A stretch of DNA of 20,017 nt. It comes from Leidyana gryllorum EB-2025a (Eukaryota > Protista > Apicomplexa). Made by a program: the position numbers and the translations under genes. The DNA lies in assembly GCA_048772705.1 (NCBI GenBank), contig JBLWGC010000068.1, forward strand, positions 1-20,017. Direction: 5' to 3'. Position 1 is the stretch's first letter. Every line of letters begins with the position of its first letter. The notes under the pieces were generated by a model. That model saw only the letters and a list, made by a program, of their open reading frames with translations, ran no database searches and had not been told where the DNA came from. Below, piece by piece: positions 2,529 through 14,821 of the stretch.

Positions 2529-2594
2529 ACTCCCTGTCTCGATCCATATGAGGGTTTGATGCTGGGCATAGCATCATTTCCACCACAGAATTCA

Positions 2595-2713
2595 ACTGGG
2601 CCTGGGCCGCGCTGGTGCAGATCCAGCAGTTGTCGTGCGATATGATTGGAGGGGTCAGACACCAACTTACGCATAAATTCCGGTCTACCCCCCTTCCCCA
2701 CTCGGGCAAGTTG
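2595..2713. pseudogene. tRNA-Ser halves in opposite orientation
   Basis: 3' half on + at 2595-2635; 5' half on - at 2683-2713. Confidence 0.65.
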
Positions 2714-6144: not shown

Positions 6145-6958
6145 TGTTATATCCGCAGTCGGGCGTACGACCGGATTCAAGGTAGCACAAGCGACATGAA
6201 CTGATCAAGAACATGAACTGATCAGCTGAAGAGCTAAGCTTAGTGTGGTAGTGCTGTCGTAGGGCGAGTGGATCAGCAGGCTCGACTCCGAGTCCCCGTT
6301 CAACCTATGAGTGTGTCCCATAACTATCGGGTGCCTCACTATCGGGTTCCGGATTCTGACTCTATGTGATTCCGCCAGTGGGATGAACATCCATCTGGAT
6401 ACTTCCCTACATATTTGGCACTTATATAGGGAGTACCTCTGAAAAGGGGGACGACCTATCACCTACGGAATCCCTGCTACCACTACCACGCCCGTGCCCT
6501 ACTACGACCTACACACACGCCCGCCACCACACGCTACCGTCCCGACTACGACCCTTGGCCTCTACAGTCACCTCCCGGCGTACTCTACCTCGCCCTCAGG
6601 ACGTGCGCCTCGACGACCCGACTACGGTCCGGACTCTAGCTGGTATTGGGTTCTGGCTCGACGCTACGGCTACAGCTACTACTCAGTTGGACAGCCTTAG
6701 GCTGGACGACGCCAGCGTAGAGTCGCAGCGGACGGCGAGAGGACACGGACACAGGAGCGACGGTCAGAGTTCTACAACAACAGGATACAAGAAGTCTTTT
6801 CCCCGGAAGACTCAGGTAGTCCTCGTGTTGTCTTTTCCGTGTGCGGCTCGTCCGCAATGCATGAAATATTTCTTCCAACTATGTCCTTCAGAATACCCGG
6901 GACGAAGGGTTCGGACGACAAGCCATCGTTCTGGAGAGTGGGAGCACGGCAAATAACA
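6145..6958 (+). mobile_element. Complete solo LTR, family B, 814 bp
   Basis: TGTTAT...ATAACA termini; TSD CAAAC at 6140-6144 and 6959-6963; shares an identical 46-nt core (6386-6431) with family A. Confidence 0.9.
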
Positions 6959-11663: not shown

Positions 11664-11737
11664 GCTCCCCTAGCTCAGCTGGTTAGAGCATCGGCCTTAT
11701 GTGCCGAAGGTCGAGGGTTCGATCCCCCCGGGGAGCA
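11664..11737 (+). tRNA. trnI: tRNA-Ile(TAT), intronless
   Basis: GCTCCCC/GGGGAGC; TCGGC CT TAT GT GCCGA; one T-stem mismatch. Confidence 0.87.
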
Positions 11738-13857: not shown

Positions 13858-14021
13858 ATGAATGGGCCCCGCAGCCCAAGAGGAGTGGCGAAGTTTTACG
13901 GAGCAGTGAGGACCAGTTCCAAGGTCGCGCCGGAAATCGAACCCAGGTCGGGAGATTCAGAGTTGTTGTGCTCCAGGGTGAGTGCCGACTGTCGAGTTCG
14001 TTCCCCCTTTTTTCCTTTTCT

Positions 14022-14026
14022 AAAAA
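14022..14026 (-). terminator. Candidate Pol III terminator (T5)
   Basis: Only minus-strand run of 4 or more T within the element, downstream of all three modules. Confidence 0.5.
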
Positions 14027-14180
14027 GCATCTAAGTTGGACCTAACGCTACCTATGTGCTACGGCTAAGGTCTTGCCTCAAATGTCTTGGCGCGCGCGTG
14101 TACAGCCTTCACCTGCACACGTATGGACAAGACTTACCTTAAGCAGCCAGTCCCGTTGACAATGCCGTGAGAGTCAGGCT

Positions 14181-14253
14181 TGTCCGCGGGGAGACTCGAA
14201 CCACCGACCTTCAGAACATAAGTCCGTAGTCATTACCATTGTGCTATTGGCGC
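14181..14253 (-). promoter_or_regulatory. tRNA-like A/B-box module 3
   Basis: A box TAGCACAATGG (14246-14236), B box GGTTCGAGTCT (14202-14192); tRNA spacing; stems poorly paired. Confidence 0.7.
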
Positions 14254-14396
14254 AGTCGCCGAACATGACGTGGCACTGCAGACCAGTGTGCAGCTTAGAC
14301 GTGCGTGTACGAAGCTGTGGGGCCTTCTGGGGGCTCCCCCACCCGTCCTCCATCCTCGACCTGCCCTCACCCGTCACCTGGGGGTCTTGGCACAGT

Positions 14397-14468
14397 TGTC
14401 CGAGGTGGGATTCGATCCGCCGACCTGCGGGTCCCAAGTCCGAGTAGTTACCACTGCACTACTGGATC
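14397..14468 (-). promoter_or_regulatory. tRNA-like A/B-box module 2
   Basis: A box TAGTGCAGTGG (14461-14451), B box GGATCGAATCC (14418-14408). Confidence 0.7.
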
Positions 14469-14520
14469 ACAATACTAAGGGCAGCCATGTGCCGGTCGAG
14501 GTGGCTAGCCAAGGGCGGAG

Positions 14521-14593
14521 TGCAGGGCCGTGGATTCGATCCTGCGACCTCCAGGTTGCGAGCACAAGACACTTCCCATTGCACTAACTGATA
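14521..14593 (-). promoter_or_regulatory. tRNA-like A/B-box module 1
   Basis: A box TAGTGCAATGG (14586-14576), B box GGATCGAATCC (14542-14532). Confidence 0.7.
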
Positions 14594-14821
14594 CACCACA
14601 ACAAGAGTCTCCAGTGCTAACCACTCACCACGCAACCGCTTCAGCCCATCCCAGAAGAGTCGTAGAACTATCCGGACTAGCCCTTTCTCAAATGAACACA
14701 CGCAACACGAGTCCCTCTACTGACCGCTGAAATAATTAACTGGCTCCTGTATATAGCGCCCAGCGTAGAGCGTTCTATTTGAGTCGGACAATCATTGAAG
14801 CACGCTCTCCGCGAATGCTAC

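Follow-up and report, generated by a model that had tools for sequence, protein, structure and literature searches.

The window, as we refer to the entire stretch of 20,017 nucleotides that was analyzed, carries part of a very large tRNA array, with 62 tRNA genes detected by ARAGORN and 66 by Rfam within its 20 kb. One of these genes is interrupted. A 640-bp insert occupies positions 13964 to 14603, beginning with TGTTGTG at 13964 and ending with CACAACA at 14603, and inspection of the sequence places one copy of the 5-bp target-site duplication AGAGT (unstranded) on its left at 13959-13963 and the other on its right at 14604-14608. The insert separates the two parts of a minus strand tRNA-Gln(CTG) gene: the 3’ part, which extends from the anticodon loop to the 3’ end and includes the B box, lies at 13922-13963, while the 5’ part, comprising the acceptor, the D arm, and the 5’ side of the anticodon stem, lies at 14604-14637. 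When the empty site was rebuilt by removing the insert together with one AGAGT, ARAGORN recovered an intact 71-nt tRNA-Gln(CTG) on the minus strand, so the insert is a true integration into the anticodon loop of that gene. Thus, the insertion originally predicted from its TGTTGTG/CACAACA ends and its AGAGT duplication is present in every respect, and it is a solo LTR left by a gypsy-type retrotransposon that had integrated into a tRNA-Gln anticodon loop inside the array.

The accessible genome, which comprises 15.5 Mb in 237 contigs, was searched for further copies of the LTR. Its beta-tubulin is 95-96% identical to proteins from the transcriptomes of Gregarina sp. and Blabericola migrator, which marks the host as a eugregarine-like apicomplexan. 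This identified a total of 14 full copies (97-100% identity) along with one half copy and one old relic (82%), and all 14 full copies have the TGTTGTG...CACAACA termini. Comparison of the flanks resolved ~9 independent insertion sites, each with its own 5-bp duplication (AGAGT, TGGGC, ACTGT, ACCTT, CTCTG, GATTC, CAAAC, and ACTGA are those listed). Three to four of the insertions occur twice, on other contigs or at other positions, with identical flanks and duplications (L001/L002, L003/L004, L005/L008, and L011/L012), which indicates either that array segments carrying LTRs have been segmentally duplicated or that haplotypes are uncollapsed. A full element of ~6.2 kb was found at C43:173686-179925, where the same LTR is present at both ends, 4,961 bp apart. 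Its primer binding site (PBS), TGGTGGACGACCTGGG, starts 2 nt past the 5’ LTR and is complementary to the 3’ end of the tRNA-Ala genes of the window, while a polypurine tract (PPT), GGGGGAG, directly precedes the 3’ LTR. The interior contains a gag-like ORF of 332 aa and a pol ORF of 1180 aa in the -1 frame, the latter with Pfam matches to an Asp protease (residues 19-101), RVT_1 (232-391, 2e-33), RT_RNaseH (480-582, 3e-38), Integrase_H2C2 (670-728), rve (743-839, 1e-13), and a C-terminal Chromo domain (1116-1169, 2e-13). The proposed LTR nature of the insert is therefore borne out both by the many copies with differing 5-bp duplications and by this full copy with its PBS, gag-pol, and PPT. The layout LTR-PBS-gag-pol(PR-RT-RNaseH-IN-chromodomain)-PPT-LTR identifies the family as an autonomous, tRNA-Ala-primed Ty3/Gypsy chromovirus of ~6.2 kb. 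It also establishes that the LTR sense strand corresponds to the minus strand of the window. The full-length element was the only one found, its flanks form no duplication, and its two LTRs are 96.9% identical; the family may consequently be nearly extinct, and this particular copy may be both recombinant and old.

Within the window LTR, three tRNA-like units are located on the minus strand, and hence in sense orientation, where the original prediction had placed them. Unit 1 spans LTR nt 11-83 (window 14521-14593), unit 2 spans nt 136-208 (14468 down to 14396 or, as predicted, 14397), and unit 3 spans nt 351-423 (14181-14253). Together they occupy the 5’ two-thirds of the LTR (nt 11-423), which is presumably U3. 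A sequence-only tRNA HMM trained on the tRNAs of the window itself matched the LTR at exactly these three units (E=8e-8, 9e-6, and 6e-8 for units 1, 2, and 3) and nowhere on the other strand. The A boxes are TAGTGCAATGG (14586-14576), TAGTGCAGTGG (14461-14451), and TAGCACAATGG (14246-14236), while the B boxes are GGATCGAATCC in both unit 1 (14542-14532) and unit 2 (14418-14408) and GGTTCGAGTCT in unit 3 (14202-14192); a pattern scan returned the B boxes as GGATCGAATC for units 1 and 2 and GGTTCGAGTC for unit 3. As anticipated, the boxes stand at tRNA gene spacing, since the distances from the start of A to the start of B determined by regular expression (44, 43, and 44 nt) are canonical for tRNAs. 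All of the canonical box positions (T8, G10, A14, GG18-19, G53, T55, C56, A58, and C61) are intact in all three units, and the B boxes of units 1 and 2 have an A at the T54 position. Unit 3 additionally contains an anticodon loop remnant, CTTATGT. The combined A..AGGTCG..B pattern yielded 43 matches across the 15.5 Mb, every one of them inside a copy of this LTR, and the reversed control yielded 0. By tests of folding, the units fail as functional tRNA genes. The Rfam tRNA covariance model RF00005 gave zero matches to the LTR even at E≤10, a result in line with the low Infernal score that had been forecast, and ARAGORN called no tRNA within the units, which rules them out as genuine host array tRNAs. 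With one crude anchoring applied to all sequences, the units form only 11-12 of 21 stem pairs (12/21 for unit 1), compared with 8.1±2.2 for shuffled sequences and 16.6 for real tRNAs. The predicted combination of poor stem pairing and preserved boxes is therefore what we observed: the units no longer fold as tRNAs, yet each keeps A and B boxes of consensus quality at tRNA spacing.

The best match of unit 3 is the tRNA-Ile(TAT) gene at window positions 11664-11737, with an alignment score of 27 against a shuffle maximum of 13, and the similarity includes the anticodon loop CTTATGT. Unit 3 is thus derived from a tRNA-Ile(UAU)-like gene. Unit 2 resembles the same gene weakly (score 17) and aligns with unit 3 at a score of 29, whereas unit 1 is more distant, its nearest relative being unit 2 (score 18). 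It had been claimed that the units resemble each other rather than the tRNAs of the array; the mutual likeness of units 2 and 3 stands, but unit 3 fits an array tRNA about equally well. Units 2 and 3 also differ from tRNA-Ile in the same ways (TGGTAA, CGGACTT, and a 3’ CGGACAA), and because these are shared derived states, the two are likely to be duplicates of a single unit that had already been altered and was duplicated within the lineage, which upholds the proposed duplication of a captured promoter for this pair. Searches with single units returned only the LTR copies, the relic, and one rearranged LTR fragment, with no free-standing copies in the genome. As all 43 pattern matches are inside LTR copies, there is no free-standing SINE source, and we rejected the units as a tRNA-derived SINE because the dispersed free-standing copies expected of one are absent. 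Two further candidates were likewise rejected. The U3 is not a captured chunk of existing array, as its spacers have no match outside the LTR copies, and the units are not a primer source for self-priming, as their 3’ ends do not fit the PBS, which instead fits tRNA-Ala.

Since it was of interest whether other LTRs share the units, we should note that they are confined to this family among those examined. A sister family in the same genome (45-47% pol identity) has a 602-bp LTR with TGTTGTA...TACAACA ends, and neither its LTRs nor those of four further families sampled in the genome contain tRNA-like units. The same is true of the LTRs of three metagenomic relatives that have the same tRNA-Ala PBS (L031, L036, and L038). 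The closest pol in a large protein database (P0001, 53% identical) is encoded on contig L030, in which a weak tRNA-like stretch (18.7 bits) begins ~40 nt into a possible 5’ LTR and is absent from the 3’ LTR; these LTRs are only 88% alike, and the contig, which is possibly chimeric, is ambiguous and was counted on neither side. A metagenome scan with pol found only distant relatives (26-36% identity). Because the LTRs of the sister family, the four further families, and L031, L036, and L038 are devoid of the units, these look like an acquisition of this family, and the earlier description of them as tRNA-derived and family-specific agrees both with this distribution and with the similarity of unit 3 to tRNA-Ile(TAT). 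As a separate observation, positions 627-698 of L030 resemble a tRNA (Rfam, 37 bits), and further tRNA-like pieces are likewise present upstream of the element, so its host may have tRNA-rich regions as well.

Ten independent LTR copies were aligned, and their variable columns were counted. Only 3 of 219 columns vary within the units, compared with 44 of 421 in the rest of the LTR (Fisher p=8e-6) and 14 of 194 in the U3 spacers between the units (p=0.005). With each indel scored as one event, the units account for 3 of 40 events (binomial p=9e-5). Overall, variation among copies is ~5-7 times lower in the units than in other LTR sequence. Neutral decay after insertion would spread variation evenly along the LTR, whereas the observed variation is skewed away from the units. 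Much of it would thus stem from the replicating lineage, which suggests that the units were constrained there. The conservation that had been predicted to be specific to the boxes fails at the available divergence, however, as 1 of 66 box columns varies compared with 2 of 153 columns of inter-box sequence. The constraint could thus act on something besides TFIIIC binding. The 82% relic does not preferentially keep the units either (identities of 0.71, 0.70, and 0.84 for the units vs. 0.73 and 0.87 for the spacers), and the A at T54 in two of the three B boxes likewise speaks against a constraint specific to the boxes.

Our preferred reading of these data is that the insert is a chromovirus solo LTR whose units were acquired in the lineage of the family, were then kept under constraint as the family replicated, and most likely still recruit TFIIIC and Pol III. 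We place the probability of this explanation as a whole slightly above an even chance, and the component that invokes TFIIIC and Pol III binding would, taken separately, stand at roughly even. Homology searches are consistent with the requisite machinery, as the genome encodes a homologue of the TFIIIC subunit Tau95 (E=1e-12) along with a marginal B-block domain match.

A doubtful, but still serious, competitor is that the units are passenger relics, i.e., tRNA, pseudo-tRNA, or SINE-like pieces that entered the LTR by accident and have no present Pol III role. Such pieces could have arrived by insertion, by recombination with the array, or by template switching onto a packaged tRNA, and their low variability would then reflect either the constraint on a U3 Pol II promoter or simply young copies. 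Accidental capture would be easy given the very high tRNA load of this genome (~10^4 genes), and many Repbase LTRs contain tRNA-like parts (PMC10886601). The lack of better conservation of the boxes among copies fits this explanation as well, as does the relic, where decay has affected the boxes of units 1 and 2 like the rest of the LTR. On the other hand, three units have each kept every canonical A and B box position and the exact spacing while their stems are close to random, which seems unlikely under uniform neutral decay. Accidental capture also has to contend with the several-fold lower variability of the units relative to the neighboring LTR, and with their absence from ~9 other LTRs examined, six of which reside in the same tRNA-rich setting. 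Less probable again is a role at the level of RNA or Pol II, in which the U3 units serve as an enhancer or promoter or as packaging, dimerization, or stability signals and their tRNA ancestry is incidental. This would account for the near invariance of entire units, rather than of the boxes alone, among copies, and by eye there is no TATA-like element elsewhere in the LTR; it leaves unexplained why three diverged units should have perfect A and B boxes at tRNA spacing, and the decayed stems make a tRNA-like fold signal unlikely.

If the units do recruit Pol III, the position of its putative stop determines what could be transcribed. A TTTTT run followed by a purine-rich run is located at LTR nt 578-582 (window 14022-14026, minus strand), past unit 3 and ahead of the PBS, and no other T4+ run occurs on the LTR sense strand. 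Pol III starting from the units would consequently yield at most a ~570-nt RNA confined to the LTR, and the genomic RNA would have to be a Pol II product. This argument is itself weakened by the host array, where the 60 nt downstream are free of T4+ runs in 51 of 62 tRNA genes and only 4 genes have such a run in the first 15 nt, meaning that array genes either employ non-canonical Pol III termination or are mostly silent. The suggestion that the units drive Pol III transcription of the element therefore does not hold for its genomic RNA, subject to the same caveat. We also rejected the lack of T4+ runs upstream of the T5 run as evidence, because only ~0.7 such runs would be expected by chance, as estimated from base composition. 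The T5 run is part of a motif near the 3’ end of the LTR, TTAGA(T/C)-N-CTTTTT-purine run (GAAAAGGAAAAAAGGGGG; LTR nt 565-600, window about 14004-14039), which by eye can also be seen on the minus strand of the 82% relic (L025 about 2625-2660) and in the metagenomic relative L030 (about 1225-1255 and 6470-6490). This recurrent GAAAAGGAAAAAAGGGGG-type motif may be a conserved R/U5 or termination/polyadenylation signal.

The nearest described relative of this LTR is Helenus, which has been grouped with Cassandra and Ajax as TRIMp3, that is, TRIMs with tRNA-like LTR sequence, conserved A and B boxes, and 4-5-bp duplications (Kojima 2024, Biology 13:119, PMC10886601). The original prediction knew of no tRNA-based counterpart of Cassandra, but Helenus/TRIMp3 is one (PMC10886601), and in the same source tRNA-like parts are said to occur in “not a few” Repbase LTRs (PMC10886601). 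Like our LTR, Helenus has a tRNA-derived stretch in which the A and B boxes are conserved but which probably does not specify a functional tRNA, as well as 5-bp duplications (in fungal and plant Helenus), frequent solo LTRs, and a proposed origin in which a tRNA-type unit inserted itself within an LTR. In contrast, Helenus elements are non-autonomous TRIMs of 311-1263 bp with one tRNA-like sequence per LTR, are presumed to be transcribed in their entirety by Pol III, and occur in fungi, animals, and Selaginella, whereas the LTR described here belongs to an autonomous 6.2-kb chromovirus of a gregarine-like apicomplexan and has three tandem units and a T5 run before its PBS. Compared with TRIMp3 elements generally, the LTR has the tRNA-derived A/B-box sequence, but the element is not a short one of up to about 1.3 kb without ORFs, and the T5 run argues against Pol III transcription of the whole. 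It is therefore highly improbable that we are dealing with a Helenus-type element, short, non-autonomous, and transcribed whole by Pol III from a tRNA-like promoter: the tRNA-like unit in the LTR, the 5-bp duplication, and the many solo LTRs are as in Helenus, but here the LTR is found on both sides of a 6.2-kb element whose gag and pol are intact, none of the 15 genome copies pairs up around a short interior, and the T5 run precedes the PBS.

Other known systems share individual features. Cassandra TRIMs similarly embed the promoter of a small RNA gene within an LTR, but theirs is a 5S (type 1) rather than a tRNA (type 2) promoter, and they are non-autonomous plant elements with a single unit. 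The tRNA-derived heads of SINEs (SINE2) similarly combine a decayed cloverleaf with A and B boxes kept at tRNA spacing; the gregarine units differ in having no free-standing copies, LINE-type tail, or poly(A), as all 43 are inside LTR copies. What is new relative to Helenus/TRIMp3 is that the element is autonomous, that it has three units, and that its host is a gregarine-like apicomplexan with ~11,000 tRNA genes. The first description of LTRs bearing tRNA-type Pol III promoters dates from 2024 and was restricted to tiny non-autonomous TRIMs. Their autonomous partners were expected not to share such LTRs and to produce their genomic RNA by Pol II (PMC10886601). Here, three units are found in the LTR of a protein-coding chromovirus, and in an apicomplexan lineage in which transposons are scarce and poorly described; gypsy-like LTR elements of gregarines are known at survey level only (PMC9141347).

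If, as we favor, TFIIIC and Pol III are recruited by the units, the question arises of what the element would gain. Pol III would give only the non-coding ~570-nt LTR RNA, while Pol II would make the 6-kb genomic RNA. As Pol III would be unable to make the genomic RNA, the likeliest benefit would be TFIIIC/Pol III occupancy itself, with the short LTR transcript as the alternative. By analogy with known barriers, such occupancy might create an open chromatin patch that shields the element from silencing, and this would be fitting for an element that is expected to be directed to silent chromatin by its chromodomain. In fission yeast, a tDNA barrier is Pol III-dependent (PMC2040200), and in the mouse, B2 SINEs are mobile chromatin boundaries (PMC8136502). 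The likeness is that one or more Pol III promoter units could, by binding TFIIIC, halt the spread of heterochromatin, with a mobile carrier already known for B2; the link of these barriers to the gregarine LTR is one of analogy, its units being known from their sequence. Taken further, the U3 could be a miniature tDNA array, its three TFIIIC-binding units forming a portable heterochromatin barrier or mimicking the giant tRNA arrays of the host, but we consider this extension rather unlikely. If the units bind TFIIIC, the family would offer a natural system in which to study mobile chromatin barriers as well as the interplay of Pol II and Pol III promoters within one LTR. If the barrier or mimicry idea were true, a chromodomain-targeted element could stay expressible in silent tRNA-rich chromatin, and as a barrier the units would constitute the first Pol III-type insulator that an autonomous LTR retrotransposon carries for itself, as well as the first such case in Apicomplexa.

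The tRNA load of the host bears upon the choice of insertion sites. A first-pass search with a tRNA model gave about 11,600 tRNA candidates in the 15.5 Mb, and the tRNA-Ala 3’ end alone has 734 genome matches at ≤1 mismatch, from which we extrapolate that about one-fourth of the genome may consist of arrays. The arrays recall the tRNA arrays of Entamoeba, and a limited full-text literature search found no report of such arrays in gregarines. Five of the nine insertion sites are in tRNA arrays, four have no nearby tRNA, and two are inside anticodon loops (tRNA-Gln and tRNA-Pro). Given the estimated array share of the genome, the five array sites do not establish targeting. The LTR elements Ty3, Ty1, DGLT-A, and Tj1 target Pol III genes and insert upstream of them at fixed distances (reviewed in PMC5911963). 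The gregarine LTR resembles these in its occurrence in or near tRNA genes; it differs in that its sites are scattered, including the four without a nearby tRNA. The anticodon loop insertions are independent events, the one in tRNA-Pro(TGG) being L009 (G000:C71:32761-33399), and their duplications, CTCTG in Pro-TGG and ACTCT in Gln-CTG when written in the tRNA sense, overlap the same loop positions, which could be either a local target preference or chance.

There are also consequences for annotation, as tRNA-like matches in this genome can stem from LTRs and LTR insertions break array tRNA genes. The rearranged LTR fragment is located beside a real tRNA gene within a tandem duplication (L024 2396-2464, plus strand, and 2562-2599, minus strand; G000:C43 about 119.4-123.1 kb). 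It consists of LTR nt 55-123 and nt 14-51 in opposite orientation, ~100 bp apart, with the break falling within unit 1, and it recurs 3,492 bp onward. Lastly, a 46-nt segment of the window at 6386-6431, which includes the TATATAGGGG motif, matches by eye nt 81-126 of the 602-bp sister family LTR (L028, sense 1672-2273), indicating that the window also holds relics of the sister family.
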